This document shows, piece after piece, positions 2,057-64,000 of a stretch of 64,000 nt of DNA. The first letter of the stretch is position 1. Every line of letters begins with the position of its first letter. Position numbers and translations under genes: made by a program. The stretch covers positions 496,001 through 560,000 of the forward strand of contig MCFH01000032.1 of NCBI GenBank assembly GCA_002104945.1, written 5' to 3'. Under the pieces are notes generated by a model that did not search any database, had not been told where the DNA came from, and saw only the letters and a list, made by a program, of their open reading frames with translations. This DNA comes from Piromyces finnis finn (lineage: Eukaryota; Fungi; Neocallimastigomycota).

Positions 2057-2194
2057 TCAGCATAGACAAGCCTTGTTAACTAATCAACAGAGGTATACTA
2101 GGGGTGGTAGAGAGATCCTGAAGCACGTGACGGAACTTAGATCGTGTGAATAGGGTGACGGCAACATTTACCATTAGACGAAAGACTCTTAGTT
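2057..2194 (+). ncRNA. Conserved leader RNA motif (domain 3), copy in A
   Basis: Alignable to 35305-35438 with compensatory changes in three helices; also at 44029-44164. Confidence 0.75.
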
Positions 2195-2545: not shown

Positions 2546-3424
2546 ATGAGCAATTCTACTACAAGGATAGATTTCAAGGAATTGAAGAAGGAACTCAAGG
2601 ATATAAAAAAACTTTCCAAAGATAATTTGGACATAAGATCCTGGGCTTCTGAAATAAGTTTATGGATTGAACTTCAAGATATCACTAGTGCCAAGAAAAT
2701 TTACATGGCATGTGTGCTTACTTCTAAGGGTGAACCAAGAAAGGTAATCCAAGAGTTGGAAGATAAAGACAGTGATAGTGAAGATGAATATGAGAGTGAA
2801 AATGAAGAAGAGAATCAGAAAAATGAATCTAATGAAGAAGATTATCCCTCACTTGGGAAAATTATCAATGCCCTTGAAACATTTTATGGATTAAAAGAAG
2901 ATCAAAGTATGTTATTACGGGAACTAAGAAGACTACGTATAAGAAGAAATGAATCAGTTAAAGATTTCAATAGAAGATATAGATCTTTATATTTAAAGTT
3001 GGATAAGAAAAAGAAGAAGCAGATTAGTGTGTTGGATTATGCAGATTCTTTACAAAATAATAAAGAAGCATGGAGAAAAGTATCTTTAAAAGACGATATT
3101 ACGTTAGAAAAGGCCTTCGAGATAGCTGAAAAAGTAGATAGGTTAGCTACTAGAATAGAGAGTGATGGTACTACCTCCACTACAGAAATGACTAAGCGTT
3201 ATACTCATTTTCAACCGTATAAAAGGAAAGTTACATTTACTGAAGCCAAAAAGTCCAATAAAGATGTGGATATGGATAACTTAGTTAAGAAGATGAAAAA
3301 TTTGACGATTAAAGCCTGTTTCTTCTGTAGTGAGCCTGGTCATTATCAACAAAATTGCCCAAAACTTCAAGCTATTATTGAAGGAAATAAGAAACGTTAT
3401 TATGATAATCATTTAAATCATTAA
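2546..3424 (+). CDS. gag: Gag of element A (capsid-like domain plus CCHC zinc knuckle)
   Basis: 292-aa ORF containing CFFCSEPGHYQQNC (CX2CX4HX4C), positioned after the leader and before pol. Confidence 0.92.
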   Translation: MSNSTTRIDFKELKKELKDIKKLSKDNLDIRSWASEISLWIELQDITSAKKIYMACVLTSKGEPRKVIQELEDKDSDSEDEYESENEEENQKNESNEEDYPSLGKIINALETFYGLKEDQSMLLRELRRLRIRRNESVKDFNRRYRSLYLKLDKKKKKQISVLDYADSLQNNKEAWRKVSLKDDITLEKAFEIAEKVDRLATRIESDGTTSTTEMTKRYTHFQPYKRKVTFTEAKKSNKDVDMDNLVKKMKNLTIKACFFCSEPGHYQQNCPKLQAIIEGNKKRYYDNHLNH

Positions 3425-7298: not shown

Positions 7299-7989
7299 TG
7301 TTAAGGAACCAACAAATAATGTTATTCTTGTCATAATTAATGATTATGACCTAATCCATTATTGTTCCTAAATGTATGAAAACTTTACAATATTCTTATT
7401 TGTAAATTAATATATACACTTAAATTATATTTAAAATTATTAATAATTATTTTTATTGAACTTAAATCTTATTTTATTAAACTTAAAAATTAATTTAGTA
7501 ATAATAATATATTGAAAATTATAGTTTATTGAACTTTTAGTTTAATTTATCAAGTTAATGAATTTTTATTAATTAAATTATAAATAATATTTCTGTAAAC
7601 TAGTAAAATTCTTTAGTTAAATATATTTAAAGTAAACTTTTAATGTATGTTAATCAATTTAATAATTTATTATAATAGTAATGTAATTTTATTATTCATT
7701 TAAAAGTAATTTAAATACTAAAATTAATGTAAGTAATTAAAGACTAATTCTTTTAATTAACACTACTTAATTTTTTACAAAAAGTATAAAAAGATGTATA
7801 TTATAAGAATTAGAGAATATACAGATATTTTTATTTTTTTTATTTTATTTTTATAAGTTTATATTTATATCCTAATAAAACAAATTTATTAATAAAACGA
7901 TTTTTCTTATTTCATTTTAATATTATTTTTGAGTATTAATAAATTTATTAATATTTTATAAATAAAATTAAATTCCTCGAACCGTAACA
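7299..7989 (+). repeat. 3' LTR of element A
   Basis: Follows the PPT; direct repeat of 247-1071 with several substitutions and indels. Confidence 0.95.
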
Positions 7990-19316: not shown

Positions 19317-19332
19317 TAAGAAATTTGTAAAT

Positions 19333-19414
19333 GTCACTTTGGCGGAGTGGTTAACGCGGTGGCCTGCTAAGCCATTTCCCTTTGGGAGCGCAGGTTCGAG
19401 TCCTGCAGGTGACG
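19333..19414 (+). tRNA. tRNA-Ser-GCT: tRNA-Ser(GCT)
   Basis: Acceptor GTCACTT/AGGTGAC, anticodon loop CT-GCT-AA, long variable arm, GGTTCGAGTCC T-arm. Confidence 0.96.
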
Positions 19415-19424
19415 AATAATTATT

Positions 19425-19497
19425 GCGAAGTTGGCGCAGTCGGCAGCGCGTAAGTCTCATAATCTTAAGGTCGTGAGTTCGAACCTCACACTTCGCA
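19425..19497 (+). tRNA. tRNA-Met-CAT: Elongator tRNA-Met(CAT)
   Basis: Acceptor GCGAAGT/ACTTCGC, loop CT-CAT-AA, TTCG T-loop (not the initiator ATCG), followed by a T-run terminator. Confidence 0.96.
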
Positions 19498-21116
19498 AAA
19501 TTTTATTATTTTTATTATGATTTAAATTAAAAACAAATAAAAAATTTTTACTTATTTTATTAGTTTCACCAGTTAAAATAAATATGTAGCTAGACATATT
19601 AATTTCATATCACAAATTTATCTACTAAATGAATATCTTAGGAATTATATGAAATAATTTAATTAAAAGCATAAATGGAAATGCTATAATAAAATTTTAA
19701 TAATTATAAAAGTTTATTATTGTAACCTTTTTTTTTTTTTTCATGGTTCAATACCACATTGTATATTCTACATTCACATATTTTTTTTTCTTCTATAAAA
19801 TACTAAAAAAAGATGTTACTATTATTGTGATGATTTGTTTTAATCTTGCTCTTATTCCACTACATTCCACTACTATAATTATTATTCATGGAATATTATT
19901 GTTTATTATTAATATTTATGTTTATTATTAATATTTATGTTTAAAAAAGATCCAATAATTTTTTTTGAAATGGAAAATTACTCCTTTTATTAAAAGTTAA
20001 TCGACTAAAAAAAACATGCTATACACACCACCATAATTTTTGTAAAAGATATTATTTAAAAAAATAATAAAGAATACTGTTTTTTTTTATATTTCTTTAT
20101 ATATTTAAATGTTGCCTTGTTCATCATCTTGATTTATCTATTTTTTCTTTAACTAAAGAAGAATAATACCATTCTTTACCTATTTTCATTGACTTTTTTT
20201 TTTAAATCTTTAAATTTTAAATATTAATAATTATTGTTCTTATTTAATAATATAAAAAATATTTACAATGTTATATATAATATATTAATTTATATATTAA
20301 TAATATACTGTAATATATTATCTGAATCAACTAATGGTTTATAAACAATAATAAATTTTAATAAATAAATAATTTAAAAGAAAAGAGAAACAAAAAGCAA
20401 AATATCAAAATATCTTTTTTTAAAAGTTTTTTATTATAAAATATAGTCTTTCACATTATCAAAATTTATCATTATATCCTATTATTAAACTTGTAGTATA
20501 AAAAATATAATAATATTGAAGAAAACAAACTAAAAAAAATTTATATATATATATATATATTTAAAAAAAGAAATAAAACAAAACTTTATTAAACACAATT
20601 TAAATATACATGTAAGTACTTTTTATAAAAAGTATATTTTTACATATATCATATATTATTGTCCTTATATATATCTGAATAAATGTGCTTATTTAAAGGA
20701 AGAAATAAAATAATAGATAGTTTGACAATTTGGAATTAATAAACTATTAAATTAGAAATAAAAAATGTAAATTTGAATTCGTGACATAGAAAATTGACAT
20801 TTTGTTTCTGTAAATTAAAAAAAAAAAAGTAATTATAATAGCAGATTACATTCAAAAACATGATATATTGAAATAACAAATAAAAAAAAAGAGGCAAGAT
20901 AAATTTCTCACACTTTAAAAAACTATTGTAACAAGTTTTAAAAAAAAAAAAATTTGAAATAATTTTTTTTTATTACTATTATTATTATTTCATATATGAA
21001 AAATATTCCACATTTTTAATTTTAATTTAAATTTTATTTCTAATTTAAATACTAAAATTATAAAACCATTATTAATTATATTAGAATTAAATAAAAATTA
21101 AAACCAATTTAAGAAA

Positions 21117-34559: not shown

Positions 34560-35760
34560 TGTAATAACGTGACTAAAAGCAATTGAGACGTAAATAAATT
34601 CACACGATAAAATAAATTTAAGTGATAACATAAATTTATTTTATTAATTTAAATAATAAAAACATAAAATTATAACATAATTTTATGTTATGTAAATAAT
34701 TTCTTTTATTTATTTTTTTTTTTATAATATTTATATTTTATTATATTTTTATTATACTTTAATATTTTTATACTTTTTATACTAGTTATTATATATTTAT
34801 TAATTAAATAATTTCTTTTATTTATTATTTTTATTTATAATATTTATATTTTATTATATTTTTATTATACTTTAATATTTTTATACTTTTTATACTAGTT
34901 ATTATATATTTATTAATTAAACAAACAAAATATAGTTTATATTTATTAAAAGATATATAAATGTATTATTATTTCTTATAATTAATTCTTTGCTTCTTGT
35001 ATTTTCTAGCCAAAAATTTATTTAATAAAATTAATTTAAACAAAACATTATTTCATAAAGTTTCCCCCTTAAAAAAGGAAATAGAACCGAGTTATATCAT
35101 TTGGTGGAGATATCGGTTCTTTTAGAGGAGGAAGAAGTTATACAATTTTAATAAATTGTATTAGTTATTTACATAACATTTTTATTTCTACTTATAGTTA
35201 TTCATTAACTATATTATAAAAAAAAAATAAAAAATAAATTATTATTATTTAATATTGATAATTGAAGTTTCATTCTTATCAATATTGAATTTAACAAAAT
35301 CGTGTCAGCATAAGCAAGCCTTGCAACTCTCAGAAGGGGTATAGTAAGGGTGGTTTTAAGATCCTGAAGCGTGTGACGGAACTTAGATCACATGAATAGG
35401 GTGACGGAAACATAAATCATCGGATGAAAGACCCTTAGGTGTGAAGCTTATTATACACATTTTGGTCGGAAATTCAATTTGATAATAACAATATTAAATA
35501 TTTAAATTTGAAATTTTAAGAATACGTTAATAAACAAATAATTAACATACTATTAATTAATTAAAAAAAAATTTTTTTTAAACCTTAATTATTAAGAAAT
35601 TGGACTGCACAAAACTTATTGAAGCTCTTGTGAAAGAAGCCAAGGAAAGAAGAATGGCGGAACTAAATAACTTTATGTTACTACAATACCGCCTAATGAC
35701 TCTTCAAGGTATCGTCACCTTGACGGATGAAAACCATGACATAAATTCATATTTATTTAT
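34560..35760 (+). mobile_element. Element B: orphan 5' LTR (34560-35099), tRNA-Ala PBS (35102-35116) and leader; no gag/pol or 3' LTR seen
   Basis: Termini TGTAATAAC/GTTATATCA; PBS TGGTGGAGATATCGG identical to the first 15 nt of the A/C PBS; ~110-bp internal tandem duplication at ~34700-34920. Confidence 0.75.
35305..35438 (+). ncRNA. Conserved leader RNA motif (domain 3), copy in element B
   Basis: Invariant blocks shared with 2057-2194 plus compensatory stem changes. Confidence 0.75.
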
Positions 35761-37725
35761 TATACATTTTATTATATATTAAATATTATATTTTATTATA
35801 ATTTATTATATACTATATCTCTTAAACATTCTATTAAGTATAGGTTATTATATATTTCTATAATAATTTATTATATATAATTATATATCTGTATTATATT
35901 AGATATTTTAAATAATTTATGGAATGAATTGAAAATATATTAAAAAAAGATGTAAAAATAATAAAAGAGAAAGGTTCAAAATATCTATTTTAAAAAGGCC
36001 ATTAAAATATAAGCAAAAAACCAGGTCCAACTTTTTATATTTTAAGTAACATTTAAAAATATTTTTTAAGCTTTTTATTAGTTAAACAAATGGAAATTTT
36101 ATGGAATGACCAATTTTATGGTAAAACAATGACTGAGCCAAAAAAAAAATAACATTTAAAAAAGACAAAAAAAGGTTTACATTTTTATTTCTCTTTTTTT
36201 TAATTTTTCAAAGAAATTGGAGTATTACCCTTAAGGTAGGTATTTCTTTTTTTTTAAGTATTTTTAAACCACACCTTTCTATTTGGTTTCCAAAATGTAA
36301 GTTTATTCTTTTTATTTGAGAATTTTAAATATTTATGTTAAAAAAAATATTTATTTATTTTTAATAACAAAAAAAGAAAAGAAAAGGACAAAGGCAAAAA
36401 AAAGGTGGAAATTGTTAAGAAGTTATAAAATCAAAAAATATATACTTTTTTTCATTTCCCAAAATGAAAATTATTGAAATTTGAATTTTCATTTAATAAA
36501 ACTTGAACCATTTTAAGATAATTAAAAATTTCAAAATTATTAAAAAAATAAAAATTTGGAAATAATTAAAATCTGGAAATTAAAAAATTCAATTTTATAA
36601 TAAAAAAAATAATAAAATAATATATTGCCAAAGTATAAACATAAAAAAATTAATTTCTCATTTCTATAATAAATAAATTTATTTAAAAAATAATGAATTT
36701 ATTTTTATTAGTTATAATATTTTATTAAAAATATAGTTTAATTTTATTATTAATATTAATAGATTATGGTAATTACAAAGAATTAATTAATGAGAAATTG
36801 AATAAATTTATATTATAAAATGTGGCTAGTTATAAAACTAAAAACTATTGCTAATAAATGTTCTTAGAACATGTAAATTACTAATATACTACTAATTATT
36901 ATTAAAACATTATTAAATATTACTAATACATTATTAATTATTTTAAACAGAAAATAAAATTATTTTAACACATATTTAATTTATTCTAAAATATTCTAAC
37001 ATTTATTTATTTATTTATTTATTTATCTTCTATTTAAGGTGTATGTTTACAAAGAAAAAATTAAATTTAAATAAACTATTTAATAGAACATATTACAATA
37101 TATCAATAAATTAAATATATTAAATAAAATATTTCAATTTTCATTCACCAAAAAAAATAAAAATTAAATTGATAACACATTATTGATAAATAAAAAGTGG
37201 GTACATTTTAAAACAATTTCATGGTCTTTTTTTTTTTTTTTGTATAATTAACATTAATTATTATTGAATTAATCCACATTTTCCATAAATTATTATAAAT
37301 TTGAAAGGGCAATTTTATTTAAATTATAAATTATTTATTTATATATTATCTCAATTTAATAAATGTAACATATTATTTTCTATTTAATATTTCTTAAAAA
37401 AGAAAAATAACAAGTTACAATTTATTTTTGTTCCTTTGATTTAAAAAAAAAAAGAAATAAGTATATGTTATTTTTATTTGTTTATATATATATATAATAA
37501 AAAAAATAAAGAATTTATATATGACTTACAATAAATTTACATGAGGTTAATGAAAAAAAAAAATTAAATTGATTATAAAGGAATAATTAATTTAATAATA
37601 TAATTAGTAAAACATTAGTAATATTAGTAAAAATTAATAAATATATTTTATAAATAACCTAATAAAATAAGTAAAAATTTTTTATTTGTTTTTAATTTAA
37701 ATCAAAATAAAAAAATAATAAATTT

Positions 37726-37798
37726 TGCGAAGTGTGAGGTTCGAACTCACGACCTTAAGATTATGAGACTTACGCGCCGCCGACTGCACCAACTTCGC
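37726..37798 (-). tRNA. tRNA-Met-CAT: Elongator tRNA-Met(CAT), second copy with two D-arm substitutions
   Basis: Reverse complement of 19425-19497 except C11T and A21G. Confidence 0.93.
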
Positions 37799-37808
37799 AA
37801 ATATCATT

Positions 37809-37890
37809 CGTCACCTGCAGGACTCGAACCTGCGCTCCCAAAGGGAAATGGCTTAGCAGGCCACCGCGTTAACCACTCCGCCAAAGTGAC
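37809..37890 (-). tRNA. tRNA-Ser-GCT: tRNA-Ser(GCT), second copy
   Basis: Reverse complement of 19333-19414. Confidence 0.96.
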
Positions 37891-37905
37891 GTTCACGTAT
37901 TTCTG

Positions 37906-42206: not shown

Positions 42207-42277
42207 TGCATTGACCGGGAATCGAACCCGGGTCTACCGCGTGGCAGGCGGTAATTATACCACTAAACCATCAATGC
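42207..42277 (-). tRNA. tRNA-Gly-GCC: tRNA-Gly(GCC)
   Basis: GCATTGA acceptor, CT-GCC-AC anticodon loop, GGTTCGATTCC T-arm, 71 nt, T5 terminator. Confidence 0.96.
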
Positions 42278-43883
42278 TCTCAATTGTTTGATTTGTTAAG
42301 GAACCAACAAATAATGTTATTCTTGTCATAATTAATGATTATGACCTAATCCATTCATTATTGTTCCTAAATGTATGAAAACTTTACAATATTCTTATTT
42401 GTAAATTAATGTATACACTTAAATTATATTTAAAATTATTAATAATTATTTTTTATTGAACTTAAATTTTATTTTATTAAACTTAAAAATTAATTTAGTA
42501 ATAATAATATATTGAAAATTATAGTTTATTGAACTTTTAGTTTAATTTATCAAGTTAATGAATTTTTATTAATTAAAATTATGAATAATATTTCTGTAAA
42601 ATAGTAAAATTTTTTAGTTAAATATATTTAAAGTAAACTTTTAATGTATGTTAATCAATTTAATAATATGTATAAATATTCATTATAATAGTAATGTAAT
42701 TTTATTATTCATTTAAAAGTAATTTAAATACTAAAATTAATGTAAATAATTAAAGACTAATTCTTTTAATTAACACTACTTAATTTTTTACAAAAAGTAT
42801 AAAAAGGTGTATATTATAAGAATTAGAAAATATACAGATATTTTTATTTTTATTTTTATTTTATTTTATAATTTTATATTAATATCTTAATAAAACAATT
42901 TTATTAATAAAACAATTTTTCTTATTTCATTTTAATATTATTTTTGAGTATTAATAAATTTATTAATATTTTATAAATAAAAGTAAATTCCTCGAACCGT
43001 AACATAAAAATTGGTGGAGATATCGGGGAATAATATTAATAAAAATTATTAATACATAGGATAAAGTAATATTAAAATATTACTAAAATATTATATAAAT
43101 TTCTTAAAAATTTATTACCCTTCAAAGTTATAGGTAATATTTATATTACTGTTGAAGCTTTAAGGTATAATATTTTAGTAGAACTGAATTAGTACGCTTT
43201 AGAAGCAGTACTTATTTAGGAATTAGTGGTTAAGTTTTTAGGTCTAGTTTATCTTTCACAGTAGGATACTGGAAAGCGCTGAACCTTTCTATTTTGCTAG
43301 AGAAATAGAAGTGCCTCGCATAATTGCTACATGACACTGGTAATACGGTAAGCTGGGCAATTGTGAACTACTTAAGCACCCTAAATAAGTATTGGAAAAT
43401 TGCTGTGAAATGCTGTTCTACTATACTTATTATTGTAATTCAAATTTTTAATAAATTAAATATTATTTTAGTATTTATAATTTTTTTAAAAAAAAAAAAA
43501 AAAATATTTTTTTTTTTAATTGAACGATTTTTAAAAATTATTCTTTTTAAAATATAAATAAATAATTCGAAAGTGACCCTTAGCGTGGCAAGTTAAACTG
43601 CTGTACGTAATACTTTGGTGTTCAATTATATCTGATAATTGGGGAAGATAATCAATTATTTTCTTTCCGCTAATTAAGTTAGTGATAATAAAGAAATTAA
43701 TTACGTTACTTCCTTTTATTAAATTATATTTAATATTAACCATCGGGTATATTTGTGGCTTATCATCAAAGAGCTACGAGGGATTTTCACTTAGAATTAC
43801 ACAACCTATAATACTTGATGGTTTAACATTATATAGGTTGGCCTATATTTTTATAAAAAGAAATAAGTTTTTAAATAATAATT

Positions 43884-43930
<47 letters not shown>

Positions 43931-44028
43931 GATATATATATCTATTCTTTTTGTTGATTCTCTTCGAGTAATTTAATATTGCTAATTGAAATATTCTTTT
44001 CTTACTGTTTTAAGTTAAACAAGTTATA

Positions 44029-44164
44029 TCAGCATAGACAAGCCTTATTAACTAATCAACAGAGGTATACTAGGGGTGGTAGAAAGATCCTGAAGCACGT
44101 GACGGAACTTAGATCGTGTGAATAAGGTGACGGCAACATTTACCATTGGACGAAAGACTCTTAG
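44029..44164 (+). ncRNA. Conserved leader RNA motif (domain 3), copy in C
   Basis: Near-identical to 2057-2194. Confidence 0.75.
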
Positions 44165-44560
44165 TTAATAGTCTATTATATATAATTTGGTCGGTAACTT
44201 GAATCAGTAATAACAATATTAAATTAAAATTCTTGCTAGTAAATTGAAAACAAATAATAATTAACTATAAGAAAAACAGAAAACAAAAGTAATAATTTCA
44301 TCTTTTCTGACTGAACTAAGATAGTAAGGAGTGATACTAAAAATTTAAATAAATAATTGGTAGTACGTGCTGTGCTAGATTATTTGTATCTCATTCTGTC
44401 AAGTGGTCGATAAAGGAATTTCGAGCTTGGTTACAACTAATAAGTGGTCGATAAAGGAATTTCGAACTTATAATTTTTTTTTAGACTATCAAAGGTATTT
44501 TTGAGTCTATACTGTGTCATCTTGTACTGCAATAAATTCGGTCAAGGAAAATACAAGAAA

Positions 44561-49485: not shown

Positions 49486-51407
49486 GCAAGAGTCTTCGTG
49501 GGGGCACTTGTTAAGGAACCAACAAATAATGTTATTCTTGTCATAATTAATGATTATGACCTAATCCATTCATTATTGTTCCTAAATGTATGAAAACTTT
49601 ACAATATTCTTATTTGTAAATTAATGTATACACTTAAATTATATTTAAAATTATTAATAATTATTTTTTATTGAACTTAAATTTTATTTTATTAAACTTA
49701 AAAATTAATTTAGTAATAATAATATATTGAAAATTATAGTTTATTGAACTTTTAGTTTAATTTATCAAGTTAATGAATTTTTATTAATTAAAATTATGAA
49801 TAATATTTCTGTAAAATAGTAAAATTTTTTAGTTAAATATATTTAAAGTAAACTTTTAATGTATGTTAATCAATTTAATAATATGTATAAATATTCATTA
49901 TAATAGTAATGTAATTTTATTATTCATTTAAAAGTAATTTAAATACTAAAATTAATGTAAATAATTAAAGACTAATTCTTTTAATTAACACTACTTAATT
50001 TTTTACAAAAAGTATAAAAAGGTGTATATTATAAGAATTAGAAAATATACAGATATTTTTATTTTTATTTTTATTTTATTTTATAATTTTATATTAATAT
50101 CTTAATAAAACAATTTTATTAATAAAACAATTTTTCTTATTTCATTTTAATATTATTTTTGAGTATTAATAAATTTATTAATATTTTATAAATAAAAGTA
50201 AATTCCTCGAACCGTAACAGATTTGTTAAGGAATGAACATAAATAGTTGAATTAGCTAGAATTTTAGGAATTAATGTGAAGATATTAACTGGATTTAAAA
50301 CAAATTCAGATAATATCTATAATTAATTAAACATAATAATTATAATTAAATAATTTCAATAATTATTTTAAAACACTTTTAAAAGTCACCTTTTAAATTT
50401 TGATTCAGTGAAAGGGTTATGATTTCAAAAATTTAATATCAATATACTATAACCCTTAACCAAAAATAAGCAAGTACGAAATAAGGTGTAACTCGCCAAA
50501 AACGATCGCTACGGCTGTAAGTGCTACGGTGATGAAACTAGGTTTATTGGAAAGCTTAGGAAGAAAGCTACAATTTGGTACAATCGCGGTCCTTCTAACT
50601 GATCATTTAAGGAAGTTATGATCATTTAAAGATTTTATTAGGTAAATTAAAATCAATATGATATCAAGTATGGATCATAAATATTTCTTATGACTTGATG
50701 AAATTAAAAATATATCAATAGGAATTTTAGTTATATTAATTTAATTAATGATAACGATTGTTACTAAAAATAGAACTAGACCCATTTAGGTGTAACAGTT
50801 AATACCTATAAATTAAATAATCTTAATTATTATAAAATAGGTTAACGGCAAGTTTTATTAGAAATAATTTTGAAAATAATAATTATTTAGTTATAACAAA
50901 TATGTTATGGTAATATCAATTAATAATGATGAATTATTAATTGAATAGTTTTTATAATTACTAATTAGGATCAACTGTTTAAATGATTAATCATATGTTT
51001 ATTTTATTTTATGTCATGACAAACAAACAAACAAACAAACAAACAATCTTATTACTTATTTAATTATATTACTAATATATTATATGTAATACTTTATTCT
51101 TATTAATATCAATTTAATAATCTGAACAAAGAATATAAAAGAGAATGAATTGAATTCGATTTTAATTCTTTGTAAAGATTATAGTTATAATCTTAATTAT
51201 ATAGTTACTTATAATATCATTTATATTATTATTAAATAAATAAAAAATTTATAAAAAGTTATTTTAAAGTAAATATAAATTTTTCATTTTTCATTTGGGA
51301 GTTTAAGGTGTTATTTTATAATTAAATTTAATTTCTTAAAAAACATTTTTACTATATAATTAATAACATTCTGACCTGGCCGCATAACCAAACCCAAAAA
51401 CTTAACA

Positions 51408-51418
51408 ATAATCTTTAC
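51408..51418 (+). other. Self-priming PBS of element D
   Basis: ATAATCTTTAC is the exact complement of GTAAAGATTAT at 51172-51182 in the LTR, about 32 nt downstream of TATAAAA (51134-51140). No TGG tRNA-type PBS. Confidence 0.85.
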
Positions 51419-51442
51419 CCGCTGTTTAGTGGCTACTTTAGA

Positions 51443-52468
51443 ATGTTCACTCCGGTTCCTAATTTCCCAGACGAGGTAAACCAACTAAGAGAGGATGCTA
51501 CTCAGACTGCCAAGGATATCATTGAGGGTATCAATGAAAATTTGGTTTTCCGTGAAGATTTTCAAAATTTTTCCAATGATGTGAATAATCGTTTAAATGA
51601 AATCATGAGTGTATTAACCAATATGAATAATAATCAAACTGCTCAGAATGAAGATGAACAACCATTGTTACATACCAATTATGATAGGATAGCTACTCCA
51701 AGACCTACTGTCTTTAGAGATGATGAATCTACTTCAACAAGGTTTGATTTGGATCATGATGTTATCATGAGAGGCCGTTTTGCTACTCCAATCACTCAAG
51801 TGCCAGATCCAGGTATGTTCTCCGGTAAGACTAGTGATACCGATTTGTTTTGTCAATTATGTGAAGATACTTTCAAAACTCTACCAAATCGAACTTTACC
51901 AGAAGAAACAAAAATTAATTTTGTACAATCCCGTCTTCGTGATGCTGCTAGAAATTGGTATCTTGCCAAGTACAAGGATAATATTTATCCATCTACCATG
52001 CAAGAATTGTTGGATGGACTAAGAATTGCTTTCTCAAATGTTGCTAGTTACAAGATAGCTAAAATCAAAATAATGCGTTTAAAACAACAATATGGTAAAA
52101 TAAATGATTATATCGAGGAATTCCGCTCTCTTTCACAACAATTTAAATGGAATGAAGAAGCATTATCTTTAATTTTTTATAATGGTTTACATCCCAAATA
52201 TCAGGAAGAAATTGAAAAGATGGAGGTATTTCCAACCACCATGGAGTCCATTATAACTAGATGTATTTTGATCGAAAGTTCTCTTTCTACAAAGAATAAG
52301 ATTAACCAGTCTTCCAACTCTAAATCTAACAAGAAAAGAAATTCACATTTCAACCACCACAGATCATACAACAACAACAACAACAATAACAACAATAACT
52401 TCCAAAAATATAATAATAATTACAATAACAACAATTATAAAGCTCAAAAAATTAGTTCAAAAAACTAA
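51443..52468 (+). CDS. gag: Gag of element D (Ty3 capsid type, no zinc knuckle, Asn-rich tail)
   Basis: 341-aa ORF with PGMFSG and retrotransposon gag-like helices. Confidence 0.92.
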   Translation: MFTPVPNFPDEVNQLREDATQTAKDIIEGINENLVFREDFQNFSNDVNNRLNEIMSVLTNMNNNQTAQNEDEQPLLHTNYDRIATPRPTVFRDDESTSTRFDLDHDVIMRGRFATPITQVPDPGMFSGKTSDTDLFCQLCEDTFKTLPNRTLPEETKINFVQSRLRDAARNWYLAKYKDNIYPSTMQELLDGLRIAFSNVASYKIAKIKIMRLKQQYGKINDYIEEFRSLSQQFKWNEEALSLIFYNGLHPKYQEEIEKMEVFPTTMESIITRCILIESSLSTKNKINQSSNSKSNKKRNSHFNHHRSYNNNNNNNNNNFQKYNNNYNNNNYKAQKISSKN

Positions 52469-55400
52469 ATAAAGGACTTCCATTGAAGTCCCATCACCAC
52501 TCGAATACAAAAATATTAAACTACACTTTTCCCACTATCAACAAAGATAATACATTACCTTCAACGTTTTTTACTTTTAATACATATGTATTATCCAATA
52601 ATGGAGGTACAAATAATGTACATAATAAAATTGCATGTACATCACTATTAGATAGTGGATCTTATTGTAATTTTATGTCGTACAAACTATTACGTACATT
52701 ACAATTACATCCTCATAAAATTAATAATGTTATCACTGTACAAGGTATCAGTGGTACTTCAATTGAACTTGATGAATATATCAACCTAAACTTTCAGTTA
52801 AAACTATTTATCAACAATAAATTCCATTTCATCAATTTCAAAGAAAAATTTTTACTAGCGGATTATATTCCGACAGATTTATTATTTGGAAATATATTCA
52901 TGTCCAAATATGAAATTCATTATAATTATAATAAAAATTATTTATATTCAAATTTAAAATATGATTTTAACAGAAAGAAATTCAATATGAAGCATGCTAC
53001 TAAATTTTTAAAATTAGAACAATTCATTTCTTATAATAGAAATGACATAAATGTTACACCTACCACTTCTACAGGTGTAAATAACACAAAAAATAAAAAT
53101 AAAAATTATTCCACCAATTTTTATAATTTAAAAAATAAAATTCATAATTTTTATTTCAGATCTAAAACCTTTAGTAAGAAGAAAAATGGTCGATTTCACA
53201 AATTTAACCCTAAACGTTCCAAATTTTTTAGAAAAGTTATATTAAATAAAAATAATTATGATAGATATAATTATAATTATTTAATTCATACTTTTTTGTC
53301 CGAAAAACCAGAAGAAGTAAGCAATTTAGAAGAACATACTATTGAGGATATTCCAAAACCCTATCGAGATTTGGCAAAAGTTTTCAGCAAACAAGAAGCT
53401 GATAAACTACCATCACATAGAATTACAGATTGTAAAATAGTACTAGAAAAAGATGCTACTCTTCACTATGGTCCCATCTATCCCTTATCAGAAGAAGAAT
53501 CAAAAGTTTTAGAAGAGTATATCAAGGAAAATTTAGAAAAAGGCTTTATTAGACCATCCGAATCACCTGCAGGATATCCAGTGGTATTTCAGAAAAAGAA
53601 AGATGGTACTCTTAGAGTTTGTATTGATTATAAAAAACTCAATTCTGTAACGATACGTAACTCCTACCCAATACCACTTATTACCGACATTATAGAACGT
53701 GTCAAAGGTGCAAAGTATTTCACCAAGCTCGACTTACGCTCTGCTTATAATTTAGTTAGAATAAGAAATGATGATGAATATAAAACTGCTTTTCGCACAA
53801 AGTTTGGTCACTATGAATATTTAGTGATGCCATTTGGTTTACGTAACGCTCCTGCTACTTTTCAGGCATTTATAAATTCTGTTCTCAGACCTTTCTTGGA
53901 AAAATCTGTTATTCTCTATTTGGATGATATTCTTATATTTTCAAAAACCTTAGAAGAACACCACCAACATGTACGTGAAGTTCTTTCTAAACTATTAGAA
54001 AATAATTTATATGCTAAACTTCCTAAATGTGAATTTGACAAACCACAAGTTGAATTCTTAGGATATGTTATTTCAGGTTCAGGAATTGCTACCGACCCAA
54101 AAAAGATAGAGTCAATCAAAAATTGGCCTATTCCTACTACAGTTAAGGATGTACAAAGATTTTTAGGTCTTTGTAACTACTATAGACGCTTTGTAATGAA
54201 TTTTGCAGACTTGGCTAAACCCCTCCACAACCTAACAAAAAAGAATGCAAAGTTCAAATGGTCCACAGAATGTGAATCCTCATTTAACATTTTAAAAACG
54301 CGTTTAACTTCAGCACCTATTTTATCACATCCTGATCCTCAAAAACAATATATTTTAGAATGTGATGCAAGTAATGTTGCTATCGGTTCTATACTTTCTC
54401 AATATGATTCAGAAAATCGTCTACATCCTGTTGCTTACTACTCCAGAAGTCTAAGTAGTTCTGAAGTTAATTATTCTATAACAGATAAAGAACTATTAGC
54501 CATTAAGGATTCTTTCTCTACTTGGAGGCACCTTCTTCTTGGTGCTAAATATAAAATAAAAGTTTACACTGATCATAGAAATTTACTTTATACTCTTGGA
54601 GGAAAGGTAGGTAATCAAAGACAACATCGTTGGCACCTTTTCTTTCATGAATACGACTTTGAACTTATATACAGACAAGGTCGTAAGAATGGTAAACCTG
54701 ATTGTCTATCTCGCAGACCTGACTACATGGATAGGACTTATGAAGAAAAGCCAGAATATATTTTAGACTCAAAAAATGTAAAACTAATACCAAGTTTCAT
54801 TGGTATTATGAGTAACTTCTTGGAACAAGTTATTCAATACTTAAAGGACGACGAAACTGCTAAGGATATTATGCTATATTTCAGCCCACATAATGACCAA
54901 AAGGCTTATAGACCATTTAGGAAAATGAACAAGTTTGAATTAAAAAATAATCTTATTTTATATAATAACTTAGTTTATATCCCTGAGAAACTACGTTTAG
55001 ATGTTCTTATGAAATATCATGAACAACCCTCTGCTGGACATCTTGGTATAAAAAGGACTTTAGAATTGATAACTCGAAATTTTTGGTGGCCTAAAATTAA
55101 GGATGATGTCACTAAATTTGTTAATTCTTGTGAGACATGCACAAGAAATAAAGTAACTAGACATCGGAAATATGGAAAATTACAACCTTTAGATACTCCA
55201 GAACGTCCATGGAAATCTATAGAAATTGACTTTCTTTGTGGCCTTCCTGAGTCTAAAGGGTACACCGTAATTATGGTAGTGGTTGACCGCTTTTCTAAAA
55301 TGATTCACTTAGTGCCGTTTAAACAAGTTCCAAACGCAGCACAAACTGCAAAAGCTTTTTTGAACAATGTATATCGTTTACATGGTCTCCCTTATGACCT

Positions 55401-56280
55401 ATATACTGATAGAGGCTCACAATTTACAAGTGATGTTTGGCTCGAATTTTTGGATTTATTATATATTCATCCAAGAATAGCTACTACTGACCACCATGAA
55501 ACTGTTGGACAGGTCGAGAGGTCAAATTCTTTTATTGAACAGTATCTTAGATGTTATTCCAAGTCTTTCTATCATGACGACTGGGTTGATTGGCTTCCAC
55601 TTGCAGAATTCGCCTATAACAACGCTGTTAATGAATCAACCAAAGAAACACCATTCTTCATTAATTATGGTTTCCACCCTCCGATGGATGAAATGACCCT
55701 ATTACCACAATGTAATATTAATCATAAACTAGTTCAAAACGTTAATGATGCATTCAACCACATAAAAGAAGTGTTACTACGCTCCAAAGAGTTGTATAAA
55801 AGAAGAGTGGATAAAAGTCGTTTAGAAGCTCCAAAATTTAAAATTGATGATTTAGTTTGGATTCAAGCCCCACCTTCTCTAAATATTGAAAATAGTTCCA
55901 AATTAGCTCCTTGTAAATATGGTCCATATAAAATAACTCAAGTTTTGAGAAATAACAATTATGAAATCGATATCAAAAAATCACCTTTTCCCAAACACTA
56001 TCCAATATTTCATGTATCTGAGTTGGAACCTTATAGATCAACTCCAAAAGAATTTTTAAATAGAACTGCGGATCCAGAATCAATAAAAGATATAGTGGAA
56101 ATATCTGGATTCCGTACAAATTATAAACAACAACGATATGAATATAAAATTCGATACAAATACCGTTCCGCTTATAATTGGGTACCAGCAAGTGAAGTAG
56201 AAGACAATCCACGTAATCAATACATTTATCAAAAATATTTAAAAAGTGGACGACATTATGCTTCTATAGCATATAATTAA
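52459..56280 (+). CDS. pol: Pol of element D (PR-RT-RNaseH-IN-chromodomain-like), entered by -1 frameshift
   Basis: LLDSGS, YLDD, CDAS, HHCC and DDE motifs; C-terminal YEYKIRYKY..NWVP degenerate chromodomain; slippery A AAA AAC at 52459-52465. Confidence 0.95.
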   Translation, partial: KKLNKGLPLKSHHHSNTKILNYTFPTINKDNTLPSTFFTFNTYVLSNNGGTNNVHNKIACTSLLDSGSYCNFMSYKLLRTLQLHPHKINNVITVQGISGTSIELDEYINLNFQLKLFINNKFHFINFKEKFLLADYIPTDLLFGNIFMSKYEIHYNYNKNYLYSNLKYDFNRKKFNMKHATKFLKLEQFISYNRNDINVTPTTSTGVNNTKNKNKNYSTNFYNLKNKIHNFYFRSKTFSKKKNGRFHKFNPKRSKFFRKVILNKNNYDRYNYNYLIHTFLSEKPEEVSNLEEHTIEDIPKPYRDLAKVFSKQEADKLPSHRITDCKIVLEKDATLHYGPIYPLSEEESKVLEEYIKENLEKGFIRPSESPAGYPVVFQKKKDGTLRVCIDYKKLNSVTIRNSYPIPLITDIIERVKGAKYFTKLDLRSAYNLVRIRNDDEYKTAFRTKFGHYEYLVMPFGLRNAPATFQAFINSVLRPFLEKSVILYLDDILIFSKTLEEHHQHVREVLSKLLENNLYAKLPKCEFDKPQVEFLGYVISGSGIATDPKKIESIKNWPIPTTVKDVQRFLGLCNYYRRFVMNFADLAKPLHNLTKKNAKFKWSTECESSFNILKTRLTSAPILSHPDPQKQYILECDASNVAIGSILSQYDSENRLHPVAYYSRSLSSSEVNYSITDKELLAIKDSFSTWRHLLLGAKYKIKVYTDHRNLLYTLGGKVGNQRQHRWHLFFHEYDFELIYRQGRKNGKPDCLSRRPDYMDRTYEEKPEYILDSKNVKLIPSFIGIMSNFLEQVIQYLKDDETAKDIMLYFSPHNDQKAYRPFRKMNKFELKNNLILYNNLVYIPEKLRLDVLMKYHEQPSAGHLGIKRTLELITRNFWWPKIKDDVTKFVNSCETCTRNKVTRHRKYGKLQPLDTPERPWKSIEIDFLCGLPESKGYTVIMVVVDRFSKMIHLVPFKQVPNAAQTAKAFLNNVYRLHGLPYDLYTDRGSQFTSDVWLEFLDLLYIHPRIATTDHHETVGQVERSNSFIEQYLRCYSKSFYHDDWVDWLPLAEFAYNNAVNESTKETPFFINYGFHPPMDEMTLLPQCNINHKLVQNVNDAFNHIKEVLLRSKELYKRRVDKSRLEAPKFKIDDLVWIQAPPSLNIENSSKLAPCKYGPYKITQVLRNNNYEIDIKKSPFPKHYPIFHVSELEPYRSTPKEFLNRTADPESIKDIVEISGFRTNYKQQRYEYKIRYKYRSAYNWVPASEVEDNPRNQYIYQKYLKSGRHYASIAYN

Positions 56281-58631
56281 TTAAAATAATATTAATAAGT
56301 CAATAATTCTCTAAAAATAACTTTTACACCATTTACAAAATATTTTTATAACAACTAAATTTCGAAATTTAACTCATCACAAAATTTTGAAATTTCAACA
56401 TTTCAAAAATTTTTACACCGAATATTTTTCAATTATCATATTAAAACTTTATTATTTTTTATTTTTATTTTCATATTCAAAATCTGCAGTATCAATTTTA
56501 TTATTAAAATTTTACCTACAAGAAAATTTTTCAAAAAGTGAAATTTCAAAAATCTCACAATGGCCAAGTGACCTTTTGAAATTATTACTTCCTCTCGAAA
56601 AAATTTTTTTAAAATCAAAAATTTTTACTTTTCGCTCCAGTTCATAGAATTCGTCTGGAATACGAATTCCTAGGGAGGGCGTTGTGAAGATATTAACTGG
56701 ATTTAAAACAAATTCAGATAATATCTATAATTAATTAAACATAATAATTATAATTAAATAATTTCAATAATTATTTTAAAACACTTTTAAAAGTCACCTT
56801 TTAAATTTTGATTCAGTGAAAGGGTTATGATTTCAAAAATTTAATATCAATATACTATAACCCTTAACCAAAAATAAGCAAGTACGAAATAAGGTGTAAC
56901 TCGCCAAAAACGATCGCTACGGCTGTAAGTGCTACGGTGATGAAACTAGGTTTATTGGAAAGCTTAGGAAGAAAGCTACAATTTGGTACAATCGCGGTCC
57001 TTCTAACTGATCATTTAAGGAAGTTATGATCATTTAAAGATTTTATTAGGTAAATTAAAATCAATATGATATCAAGTATGGATCATAAATATTTCTTATG
57101 ACTTGATGAAATTAAAAATATATCAATAGGAATTTTAGTTATATTAATTTAATTAATGATAACGATTGTTACTAAAAATAGAACTAGACCCATTTAGGTG
57201 TAACAGTTAATACCTATAAATTAAATAATCTTAATTATTATAAAATAGGTTAACGGCAAGTTTTATTAGAAATAATTTTGAAAATAATAATTATTTAGTT
57301 ATAACAAATATGTTATGGTAATATCAATTAATAATGATGAATTATTAATTGAATAGTTTTTATAATTACTAATTAGGATCAACTGTTTAAATGATTAATC
57401 ATATGTTTATTTTATTTTATGTCATGACAAACAAACAAACAAACAAACAAACAATCTTATTACTTATTTAATTATATTACTAATATATTATATGTAATAC
57501 TTTATTCTTATTAATATCAATTTAATAATCTGAACAAAGAATATAAAAGAGAATGAATTGAATTCGATTTTAATTCTTTGTAAAGATTATAGTTATAATC
57601 TTAATTATATAGTTACTTATAATATCATTTATATTATTATTAAATAAATAAAAAATTTATAAAAAGTTATTTTAAAGTAAATATAAATTTTTCATTTTTC
57701 ATTTGGGAGTTTAAGGTGTTATTTTATAATTAAATTTAATTTCTTAAAAAACATTTTTACTATATAATTAATAACATTCTGACCTGGCCGCATAACCAAA
57801 CCCAAAAACTTAACAATTAACCTTCAACTATTTATATTCCTTACTAGTGTTTAACTCTATTTTTAAAATATAAAAATTATAATATATAATTTTTATACAT
57901 TTTTCTAGTAATTATTAATATTTTTATTATATAGTTATATTATTTGTATATAGTTATTTAAGACCTTTATTATTAGTATTAGTATAATTACTTATAATAT
58001 TTTATACTTATAAATTTTATAAAATTTTATTATTAAAATAGTTATAGGTATTTTATTATTATTTAAGGTTTATTTTATTAATTAACTTTATTGTATAATA
58101 TTTTATAATTTGAAATTATGACATAGAATTTAATTATAATTTTTACTAAAAGAGGCAACTGTTACACACAAAACAGAAGATACCTCGACAGAAAAATTAT
58201 TATTTATGTCTAAAAAAGGGCATAATTAATTGAATAATATAATTTTATTATATGTCATAATTAAATATATAATATATGATATGCAAAAATGTTACACATA
58301 TCATAAATTAAAATTTTATTAATTATAAATTAAAAATTTTTCTATTCAAATATTAAGAGATTATTCATAATATATATTAAGGATTTAATTAATATATGTT
58401 ACAGTGAATGATCCATATATTATAAATGAAATCAATTTAAATCCTTAGCTATCCAAAACCATTAAATTTCAAATAATGGATAGTTGGAAAAAGTACGAGG
58501 ATTTTTGAGAAAATTTTTAAAAATTGAAAAATCAAAAATAAATTAAATGAATAAAAATTAAAATTAAATAAATTTTTATTTTTATAACTATTCAAGTGTT
58601 TTGTGATATCTTATTTGAACCGTAGCAGATT

Positions 58632-60707: not shown

Positions 60708-63700
60708 ATGGTCCTCCTCCAGGATTCGGATACCAGACGAATCTAGAATTTTAATATTTAAATATATGTTTTTCTTTTTTAATAAACTAAACTAAGGAGT
60801 GAATTTTCTTAATTATAAAAATACATTTAATATAATAAAATACATTTTTTTTTTAATATTACTAAAGTTAAAAATAAAATATTGATAAATTTGATATTAA
60901 TAAATTGTTTAATAATAAAATTGATATTGATAATGATATTAATAAGTTTTGATAATAATAATAATTGTGATTTTAATATTAATAATAAATATAATTTGAA
61001 TTTTTTAACTATTTTTTATTTCTTTCTATTAAATTTTTTAAGTAGCCCCTTGCAATTTAGATTTTCTTCAGGCTCCCACGAAGCTTCATTGATTGAATAC
61101 CCTTTCCATTTAATCAGGTATTGTATTTTTCCGTAATGTCTTCTTTTATCCAGAATTTCTTCAACTTCGTATTCTTCTTCATTGTCAACGGTAATAGGTG
61201 GCGGTGGTGGTTGAGATCTTCCAAATTTATCTTCGACATATTTCTCAAGATTGGATACATGAATAACTGGATGAATCTTAATAGATTTTGGGAGACTTAA
61301 TTTAAATGTAACATTTGATATTTTTTCCAAGATTTTGTATGGGCCGAGTTTTCTTGGCTTAAATTTTTTATTTCCTTTGTGGATAATTAAAGAACTATCC
61401 AGCCAAACTTTGTCACCAACTTTAAAATTCGGAGCTTCTTTTCTACGTTTGTCAGCATGCTTCTTCTGGGTTTCCATGGCAGATTTTAAATTTTCTTTTA
61501 AGGTATTAATTAAAGTTTTAAAATCTCTTGTAAACTCTTCTGCTCTTGGGACTTTAGATAAGTCTGGAATAACTGGTGAATATTTTGGATGAAAGCCGTA
61601 ATTCAAAAAGAATGGAGAAAATTTGGATGATTCTTGGACCACGTTGTTATAACTAAATTCTGCAAGACTAAGAAAACTTTTCCAATTTGAACCTTTATAA
61701 TTTGAGAAACATCTTAAATATTGTTCTATAACGGAGTTCACCCTCTCCGTCTGACCGTTTGATTGATGATGAAATGGAGTAGACAACTTAAGTTCAATGC
61801 CAAGGGAGGAACAGATGGATTGGAAGAATTTAGAGGTAAATTGAGAACCTCTATCCGAGACAATAGATTCAGGTAGGCCATGAAGACGGAAAATATTATC
61901 AATAAAGGCTGTGGCTGTTTCGGCGGCGGAAGGAATACTTTTGAACGGAATGAGATGAACCATTTTTGTAAGACGATCAACAACAACAAGAATGCAAGTG
62001 AAACCAGAAGATGAAGGCAAATCTGTAATGAAATCCATTGAAATGGATGACCAAGGACGCTCAGCAATATCAAGAGGATTCAGAAGACCATAAGGTTTAT
62101 GACGAAAGGTTTTTGAACGACAACAAACTTCACAAGAACGAACGTAGTCTTTAACATCAGAAGAAATAGAAGGCCACCAGAAGTCTCTAGCAATAAGAGA
62201 AGATGTTTTCTTTATTCCGAAATGACCAGCTGAAGGAGAGTCGTGACAGAGTTTAAGAATTGAAAGACGACAATTTGGAGGAACATAGATTCTGTCAGTA
62301 AAAAGGAGAAAACTATTGCTTAAGGAAAATTTGTCAATTTGAGGGTGAGGTATTGGAGGTTTCCTACAATCAAGATATTCACAGATTTTATTGTAAAAGT
62401 CATCATTTATATATTCGGAAAGAAAAGAATCACTAATGGACGAAACAGAAGTCACAATGGCACAAAAGTTTTCAGGGCGAAGAACATTAAAAGGAACATC
62501 AGAAGAGGAATTCGAATTGATAGCATAATCAGGACGACGAGATAGAGCATCAGGCTTACCGTTAGAAGAACCAGAACGATAAATAATAACAAAGTTAAAT
62601 TCAGAGAGAAACAAAGCCCAGCGAACAAGACGTTGAGACATTTTTTCAGGTTTCTTTTGATAGAGTAAATTTCGATGATCCGAGTAAATCTTAAAAGTAG
62701 AAGAAGAGCCTTTAAGTAGATGACGCCATGTTTCAAGAGCAGCAACGATAGCTAAGAGCTCTTTATCATATATTGGATAATTACGTTCAGGACCAGTAAG
62801 AGAGCGAGAAAAGAAAGCAACTGGATGGGTCATATTATCAATTGGAGAGACTTGCGAGAGAATAGCACCAATGGCAAAGTTACTTGAATCAGTTTCGACT
62901 ATGAATGGAAGTTCACGATTAGGAAATATAAGAACAGGAGCAGAAACAAATAAGGACTTGAGTGAATCGAAAGCATCTTGAGCTTCTTTAGACCATACAA
63001 ATTTAACATTTTTCTTCAAAAGTTTATGCAAAGGATGAGCGATCTTTGCAAAATTTGGAATAAATCGACGGTAGTAGTTCGCAAGACCAAGAAAAGATTG
63101 AACCTCTTTAACATTAGATGGAGTAGGCCAGTTTAAAATAGAAGAAACTTTATTTGGGTCCATGTGAATACCATCAGTAGAAATCCTATGACCAAGGAAA
63201 TCAATAAAAGAAACAAAAAACTCGCATTTTTCCAATTTAGCATAGAGCCCAGCATCCCTCAGGAGTTTCAAAACAGTTTTGACATGAGAAATATGAGATT
63301 TATAATCCGAGGAAAAAATAATAATATCATCTATGTAAGAGAAAGCGAATTTACCAAGAACGTCTTCAAGAACATCATTAATGAAATGTTGAAAAACAGC
63401 AGGTGCATTTTTCAACCCAAAAGGCATCACACAGTATTCAAAATGACCTAACTTGCAAGTAAAAGCGGTTTTATATTCATCACCACTTTTAATCCTGACC
63501 AAGTTATAGGCAGAACGAAGATCCAATTTTGAGAAAATCTTCCCTTTTCCAAGATGTTCAAGCATATCTTGTATAAGAGGAAGGGGATAAGAATCACGAA
63601 TAGTTATGGAGTTTAATTGGCGATAGTCAACACACATACGAAGTTGACCGTTTTTCTTAGGTACAAACAGAATAGGAGCTCCCGCAGGCGATTTTGATTT

Positions 63701-64000
63701 TCTAATAAATCCTTTCTTGAGATTTTCTTTTATATATTCTTCTAAAGCAATTGATTCGGTTTCTGTTAGAGGATAAATCGGTCCATAAAACAATTTTGAA
63801 TTTTCTTTGAGTTTTATTTCACAATCGTATGGACGGTGTGGAGGAAGTTTTTCAGCATTAGATTCATTGAAGACATCAGCAAAGTCAGAGAGAACATCCG
63901 GAAGTATAATAGAAGAATTGGGTTCTGATTTAGAGTTTGAATCGGATTTGAGAATAGAATTGGAATGAATATTAGAATCAGAAAAAGAAGTCAAAACAGA
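60708..64000 (-). mobile_element. Chromovirus N, internal 3' part; its 3' LTR begins at 60708 and runs leftward (end not resolved); 5' part lies outside the window
   Basis: PPT complement TCCTCCTCC at 60712-60720 next to the minus-strand TGTAACG LTR start. Confidence 0.9.
61016..63994 (-). CDS. pol: Pol of chromovirus N (RT-RNaseH-IN-canonical chromodomain), 5'-truncated by the window
   Basis: YIDD, TDSS, HHCC and DDE motifs; [26 protein letters not shown] chromodomain. Confidence 0.96.

Follow-up and report, generated by a model that had tools for sequence, protein, structure and literature searches.

The window analysed here comprises 64,000 nt of the Piromyces finnis genome. Elements A, B and C, all read on the forward strand, are the LTR retrotransposons that carry the leader sequence described below. 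Element A is bounded by a 5' LTR at 247–1071, which begins with TG and ends with CA, and a 3' LTR at 7299–7989, both delimited by self-comparison of the window and by reading. Its primer binding site (PBS; TGGTGGAGATATCGGGG, 1079–1095) follows 7 nt past the LTR and matches the complement of the 3' end of tRNA-Ala(UGC) plus CCA at 17 of 17 nt; the corresponding tRNA gene is present in multiple copies in the genome. The gag gene at 2546–3424 encodes a zinc knuckle, and the Pfam domains of Pol follow in the order RVT_1, RT_RNaseH, Integrase_H2C2 and rve, which is the Ty3/gypsy (Metaviridae) order. Domain order, TG...CA LTRs and PBS together identify the host elements as Ty3/gypsy. Element C belongs to the same family (96% identical to A); its 5' LTR (42294–43004) and 3' LTR (49508–50219) are 100% identical, and its PBS lies at 43012–43028. 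Element B is truncated past the beginning of gag and has a PBS at 35102–35116, whose 15 nt are identical to the PBS of A.

The surroundings of these elements are crowded. A tRNA-Gly(GCC) gene on the opposite strand adjoins element C (42207–42300): the 5' LTR begins 16 nt upstream of the gene's 5' end, an insertion that corresponds to Ty3-like targeting of Pol III genes. Pairs of tRNA-Ser and tRNA-Met genes occur in two inverted copies (19332–19498 and 37725–37891) amid stacked elements. About 55 nt past the 3' LTR of C begins another Ty3/gypsy element, D (50275–57817), with 1135-bp LTRs that are 100% identical, a Pol with a Tf2-type SH3 domain and a leader of only about 30 nt, which does not contain the sequence studied here. 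At the gathering threshold, Rfam returned five tRNAs only in the whole window.

The original prediction had described a conserved RNA motif of about 135 nt at 2057–2194 in A, with further copies in C (44029–44164) and B (35305–35438). Direct reading located all three copies at these positions, together with every sequence block listed as common to A and B and both occurrences of GTGACGG-n-AAC within the motif. The two longest of the blocks, GATCCTGAAGC and TGACGGAACTTAGATC, occur three times each in the window against an expectation of 0.17–0.20, a count that none of 100 shuffles reached. The length of the unit had to be revised, however: blastn extends the similarity to 1999–2251 versus 35247–35498 at 76% identity, giving a domain of about 255 nt that forms a long closed stem, with the described motif at its apex. 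We refer to this leader domain as domain X. The whole closed domain spans 1999–2252 in A, 43971–44224 in C and 35247–35499 in B, and is matched by covariance model R1 with 277, 283.8 and 273.2 bits, respectively.

Domain X was found in four subfamilies, A (including copy C), A2, B and E. The tRNA-Ala(UGC) PBS is carried by A, A2 and B, and the distance from PBS to X varies from about 920–960 nt in A over about 545 nt in A2 to about 120–150 nt in B. Since the PBS sits upstream of the motif in A and B, X belongs to the leader between PBS and gag and never to the LTR. In agreement, window comparison and covariance-model search never placed X in an LTR, including the 3' LTR of A. Just upstream of X lies an A-run of 9 nt in copy A (1940–1949) and about 48 nt in copy C (43890–43927), and in a family E copy (L073) A19 runs flank X on both sides.

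Fold and covariation of domain X

We aligned 12 sequences from the four subfamilies, all from one genome, and predicted a consensus fold with RNAalifold. The fold contains 72 pairs with a covariation term of -9.2 kcal/mol, and 98.4% of pair cells are paired, compared with 35–43% when the 3' partners are slid by 1–3 columns. Changes on both sides that keep the pair are found at 23 of the 72 pairs, and none of 500 shuffles scored as high in covariation as the observed alignment; this covariation stems wholly from three to four lineages in one genome. Single-sequence folds are likewise more stable than those of dinucleotide shuffles, with minimum free energies of -61.1 kcal/mol for A (z -3.3) and -62.9 kcal/mol for B (z -3.8). 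The covariation that had been seen by comparing three copies thus stayed strong in the larger alignment, and the compensatory helices named at the outset were recovered: CACGTGA/TCGTGTG as helix 13, GGTGGTAG/TTACCATT as helix 11 and AGAG/CTCT as helices 8–9.

The closing stem consists of the outer helix, four more AU-rich long-range helices and helix 7, together about 45 bp. In the outer helix (helix 1) the 5' arm ATTTAATATTG at 1999–2009 pairs with 2242–2252, and 9 of its 11 pairs never vary. The 5' arms of the long-range helices 3–7 (2030–2080) pair with 3' arms at 2192–2238, with changes on both sides in 17 of 35 pairs; the 3' arms include the unpaired, near-invariant TTGGTCGG at 2215–2222. 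Between 2103 and 2175 follow the apical helices 11 (2103–2110/2168–2175), 12 (2117–2119/2153–2155) and 13 (2124–2131/2140–2148), together with the two GUGACGG-n-AAC repeats.

The core at 2088–2194 differs in composition from its surroundings, with 30% G and 46% GC compared to 12% G and 22% GC in the window, and a purine content of 61%. Its invariant residues are mostly located in internal loops and junctions (GGUAUA-UAGGG, GAUCCUGAAGC, GGAACUUAG, GAAUAGGGUGACGG and GAAAGAC). GNCGG motifs are found three times in X, twice as GUGACGG and once as UUGGUCGG, the latter in the 3' arm. Three B-type copies (L035, L036 and L037, at G000:C222:243936, C152:682196 and C152:613409) share a deletion of 25–29 nt between the GUGACGG repeats, by which hairpin 13 is lost and one hybrid repeat is kept. 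These variants have apparently still spread, and one GUGACGG repeat may therefore suffice.

All measures of strand asymmetry favor the sense strand. It is more stable than the antisense strand by 5.6–18.8 kcal/mol in 12 of 12 sequences, the alifold energy is -47.3 for sense versus -33.6 for antisense, and the alignment holds 70 G·U cells versus 9 A·C cells, so that only the sense strand folds well. We are highly confident that X is a real and selected sense-strand RNA structure. A search for pseudoknots in X gave one weak alternative only, in which the invariant AAUAGG would pair with the 3' arm of helix 6.

We also compared X of A and B, including flanking sequence, and a second leader domain (Y, see below), with the covariance models of Rfam 15, which cover among others hammerhead, HDV-like, twister, pistol and hatchet ribozymes, RNase P/MRP, SRP and tRNA. 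At E≤10 only weak snoRNA-like and other matches of 10–22 bits appeared, far below the gathering scores. A tRNA-like origin found no tRNA model match, and a literature search returned no paper describing X. The proposal of a novel retroelement RNA is thereby borne out: X matches no Rfam family, covaries strongly, folds on the sense strand and is borne by LTR elements. It is a new RNA family of the retroelement leader cis-element type, and what is unusual about it is the apparent modular transfer between lineages.

Distribution of domain X among retroelements

Searching the P. finnis genome (56,455,805 bases in 232 contigs) by DNA similarity, sequence patterns and a covariance model of the core revealed about 51 copies of X; the core model R2, with 148 positions, gave 51 genome matches. 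One of these is a divergent copy at G000:C176:370441-370608 (59.8 bits, E 1.2e-7) that is unlike all others. All 50 copies that were read lie inside Ty3/gypsy elements. They fall into the subfamilies A, A2 (92% identical to A), B and E, and, where gag is present, each variant precedes the gag gene belonging to its own family; the truncated copies L031, L035, L061 and L064 show no gag match downstream of X. The pattern of the outer helix was matched at 42 genome positions, and each of these belongs to an X copy within an A, A2, B or E element. Two loci considered as recombinants (L023/L060, gag 56% identical) turned out to be a degraded A copy. Between A and A2 the domain is better conserved than its surroundings, with 91.7% identity in X versus 82% across the stretch containing it.

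How closely the host elements are related depends on the pair considered. The original prediction had placed the motif in unrelated LTR families and had found that the LTR of B and the rest of its leader do not align with A and C. This is too strong for B: elements A/C and B are distant relatives that have the 15-nt PBS and a similar LTR end (GAACCG...CA) in common, and the Gag of B is 33% identical to that of A. For A and E, which are very distant, the description is closer to the mark. The Pol proteins of E and A are 32–33% identical over about 670 residues, compared to 53–58% between E and the D/F-type Pol, and Gag similarity is undetectable apart from a match at the CCHC zinc knuckle. Family E also lacks the tRNA-Ala PBS. 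Domain X itself is 83–84% identical between A and E, and 75–76% between A and B.

A sister lineage of E, termed E2, is present in the window on the reverse strand at 61016–63994 and continues into L091. Its Pol and Gag are 89% and 59% identical to those of E; its leader lacks X. For the coordinate comparison of E with E2, two E segments were joined without the nested element described below. The likeness of X in A and E, the distance between their Pol and Gag proteins and the lack of X in E2 together make X appear to be a laterally exchanged leader module. Judged from these comparisons, lateral exchange between Ty3/gypsy lineages is probable, and it explains the presence of X in several families better than conservation from a common ancestor. 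The direction of transfer is suggested by a midpoint root and the missing X in E2. Six E copies have gag genes 99.4–100% identical to each other, and an E LTR pair is 99% identical; the chimeric leader hence works in a recently active element.

One E copy (L073/L077/L078, G000:C192:173001-202999) harbors a complete nested element between its gag and pol, in which one gag-pol ORF of about 1534 aa is enclosed by 620-bp LTRs that agree at 99%; a further LTR pair lies directly upstream of this E copy. Upstream of X we noticed a second conserved leader module, M2 (about 1504–1911 in A), which is found in A, E and E2 at 65–68% identity and is missing from A2 and B. By eye, M2 was also seen in a relative from outside the genome (L082, about 530–830). 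It may be another structured RNA.

Homologues of Gag were found only in Neocallimastigomycota (Piromyces sp. E2, Neocallimastix, Anaeromyces and Orpinomyces) and in environmental contigs. The covariance-model search proposed with the original prediction, which detected X across the P. finnis genome, gave no X with either R1 or R2 in the leaders of 12 gag-homologue loci from Piromyces sp. E2, two Neocallimastix genomes and metagenome contigs. The exact core pattern had no match in a metagenome contig collection. As far as seen, X is specific to this genome among the sources searched.

In two Neocallimastix genomes (L080, L081) and one metagenome family (L086–L088) the stretch between PBS and gag, behind the same tRNA-Ala PBS, is occupied by a different domain, Y. 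With 250–320 nt, an AU-rich long-range closing stem and a GC-richer core, Y folds at z -4.2, and 20 of its 76 pairs show compensatory changes between two lineages. It resembles X in position, in the AU-rich long-range stem and in the short motifs GGTATAC, TGAAGCG, GACGGnnCTnAGAnCG and GAATAGGG. Homology of the two domains is unsupported, as blastn, Smith-Waterman alignment against dinucleotide shuffles and the X covariance models gave no link. Since Y holds the leader position of X elsewhere, a structured domain at this place may be general in the lineage.

Relatives from other sources also have a hairpin in common with family A, UAGACUnUCAAAgGGAUUUUUGAGUCUA, located just 5' of gag in 1–4 tandem copies (2467–2494 and 2428–2460 in the window, 775–845 in L086 and 1110–1290 in L082). 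Families B and E lack it. This hairpin is an alternative candidate for a Gag-binding signal.

Candidate functions of domain X

X would act in cis as a structured domain of the sense transcript, the genomic RNA and mRNA of its Ty3/gypsy element. In the mechanism that we propose, the G-rich and partly unpaired apical core with its GNCGG motifs would be raised on about 45 bp of AU-rich long-range helices. Exposed in this way, the core would be bound by the zinc knuckle (NC) of Gag, and X would be a packaging or dimerisation signal at the top of a long stem, comparable to the pregenomic leader of caulimoviruses. The domain behaves as a portable module, located between PBS and gag in A/A2 and B, and family E most probably shares it by recombination, either through template switching of co-packaged RNAs or through ectopic DNA exchange.

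The packaging signals (Psi) of HIV-1, MLV and MMTV lie between PBS and the gag AUG and combine long-range pairing with exposed unpaired purine- or G-rich motifs. X fits this location, being in the PBS–gag stretch of the genomic RNA with the LTR free of it, and it resembles Psi in its long-range pairing and in exposed G-rich motifs that a zinc-knuckle NC could bind. Unlike Psi, it lacks a conserved palindromic kissing loop and an upstream splice donor known to be used, and it is common to elements with unrelated Gag. When we looked for a palindromic loop suited to dimer initiation, no conserved one was found in X; GUAUAC occurs in A only and GAUC is missing from E. A further parallel is offered by CaMV and RTBV, in which a purine-rich packaging signal atop a large leader stem-loop binds the coat protein (PMC5902531). 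Their leaders and X have in common the long 5' leader of a Ty3/gypsy-related reverse-transcribing element, the elongated stem-loop closed over a long range and the purine-rich apex; X differs from them in that its PBS lies upstream of the structure, not downstream, that no short uORF precedes the stem base and that no sequence similarity is found. The caulimovirus hairpin is also larger, with about 600 nt compared to about 255 nt for X.

In Ty1 and Ty3, boxes in the leader complementary to arms of the primer tRNA extend the interaction with it. X shares with these boxes the location near a tRNA PBS in the leader of fungal LTR elements. It differs in that the PBS alone pairs 17 nt of tRNA-Ala, and complementarity of X to this tRNA is at the level of shuffles in A and B: in a crude test the duplex energy was no better than that of shuffled sequences (11/40 for A, 21/40 for B) and beat them only for E, which itself lacks the tRNA-Ala PBS. 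By eye, family A alone shows 9 nt that are identical to the D-arm of tRNA-Ala. The conserved TTGGTCGG was considered as a second PBS and rejected; it lies 0.36–1.1 kb away from the LTR, and its conservation is limited to 8 nt.

The distribution of X also bears on the packaging role. Because the Gag proteins of A and E share only the CCHC knuckle, a Gag-specific signal common to both is not obviously expected, and the separate hairpin 5' of gag in the A lineage, conserved across species, is an equally good candidate for packaging. A role in translation control or the recruitment of a host factor is almost as plausible, since X serves elements with unrelated Gag. In one form of this idea X would recruit a host factor for ribosome entry, nuclear export or exonuclease protection, independent of the proteins of the element and hence able to pass horizontally; we regard this as a minority possibility. 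For translation control in particular, X would be an internal ribosome entry or landing structure or a shunted obstacle, bringing ribosomes to the gag AUG after a leader of 0.5–1.5 kb. No ATG occurs between X and the gag start codon in A, and the same holds from the 3' end of X or Y in 8 of 8 leaders, for which 2.1–9.1 would be expected from mononucleotide shuffles. The fold, with -57 to -67 kcal/mol, stands in the path of scanning ribosomes, the use of X with unrelated Gag proteins would fit a partner in the host machinery, and in the related Caulimoviridae ribosomes are known to be shunted past a hairpin of the leader (PMC5902531). ATG is depleted over the whole leader, however (2 versus 17.6 expected upstream of X in A; 0 and 1 found in B and E), which fits plain cap-dependent scanning as well as ribosome entry ahead of gag, and an IRES is therefore not required. 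The defining feature of a shunt, a short uORF whose end lies a few nt ahead of the base of the stem, is missing in A, B and E; no ATG lies within about 500 nt upstream of X in A, in the whole 128-nt stretch between PBS and X in B or within about 450 nt in E. Translation control seems rather unlikely. We hold it less probable still that X binds a host factor for export, stability or protection of the unspliced RNA, in the manner of a constitutive transport element (CTE) or an exonuclease-resistant RNA. The CTE of MPMV is an extended stem with conserved purine-rich internal loops, a repeated motif and a host factor as partner. X resembles it in the extended stem, the large purine-rich internal loops of invariant sequence and the repeated short motif, and a putative host-factor partner would explain the portability of X among lineages whose Gag and Pol are unrelated. 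X is located 5' of gag and not in the 3' UTR, though, its direct repeats occupy dissimilar places in the fold, whereas MPMV has symmetric loops, and it matches no Rfam family.

Contigs from public P. finnis runs were consulted for a transcript. Four runs hold the X region as contigs, including 5.6-kb contigs of another copy (94–98% identical over the compared part) that extend from 1946–1959 through X and gag into pol. One run contig skips 130 nt (1502–1631) with GT..AG ends, suggesting an RNA origin and a possible spliceosomal intron in the leader. In two runs the probable-RNA contigs start at 1946–1959, just 5' of X, with about sevenfold the depth of the upstream leader, which would suit a protected RNA or, alternatively, a gag-pol transcript initiated internally, with X at its 5' end and a function in the DNA or promoter just upstream. 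Contigs do not reveal RNA ends, the contig break coincides with the A-run, the length of which varies between copies, and a third run shows no depth step, so we do not claim an RNA 5' end here. A- and TATA-rich sequence upstream of X in A, B and E would agree with such a subgenomic transcript, but AT-rich runs are everywhere in this genome, the contigs also cover the upstream leader, and compensatory changes and sense-strand G·U pairs argue for selection on RNA pairing and not on duplex DNA; we consider it improbable. That X is a functionless relic of a palindromic insertion, MITE-like or foldback, is more improbable still. The perfect 11-bp terminal inverted repeat, the long imperfect arms and the presence or absence of X as a block between E and E2 recall such an insertion; no stand-alone copies exist among the genome hits, however, with 42 of 42 places of the outer inverted repeat within the four LTR subfamilies, and the 23 compensatory pairs, the strand-asymmetric fold and the better conservation of X than of the flanking leader between A and A2 speak against such a relic. 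Least of all do we expect a self-cleaving ribozyme, an option raised by the original prediction to which nothing in the data points. Covarying helices do frame invariant unpaired nucleotides as in ribozymes, but no match to a known class was obtained at E≤10, the assembled contigs show neither joints nor loose ends within X, and cleavage in the leader would separate R-U5-PBS from gag-pol and destroy the template for replication.

A platform for binding of Gag/NC and packaging thus ranks as the most likely function that we infer for X, followed by translation control. By analogy with the systems described above, we propose the packaging role tentatively. For the account as a whole, a portable and laterally exchanged sense-strand structure with a function in packaging or dimerisation, we estimate a probability of about 0.4.

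Much work has been done on the cis-acting RNA structures of retroviruses, Ty1/Ty3 and caulimoviruses, and next to nothing is known of those in the abundant Ty3/gypsy elements of early-diverging fungi. The present analysis yields a new leader RNA with a covariation-backed model of about 255 nt, for which natural variants are at hand in the deletion variant and in a sister lineage without X. The X elements supply concrete constructs for work on Gag binding, translation and structure probing. Anaerobic fungi are difficult to engineer; were the partner of X a host factor, they would gain a portable RNA tool as well. The comparisons also give evidence that a leader module can pass from one retroelement lineage to a very distant one and remain functional in a family of recent activity; should the host-factor reading be true, X would represent a mobile cis-regulatory RNA cassette circulating among the retrotransposons of one genome.
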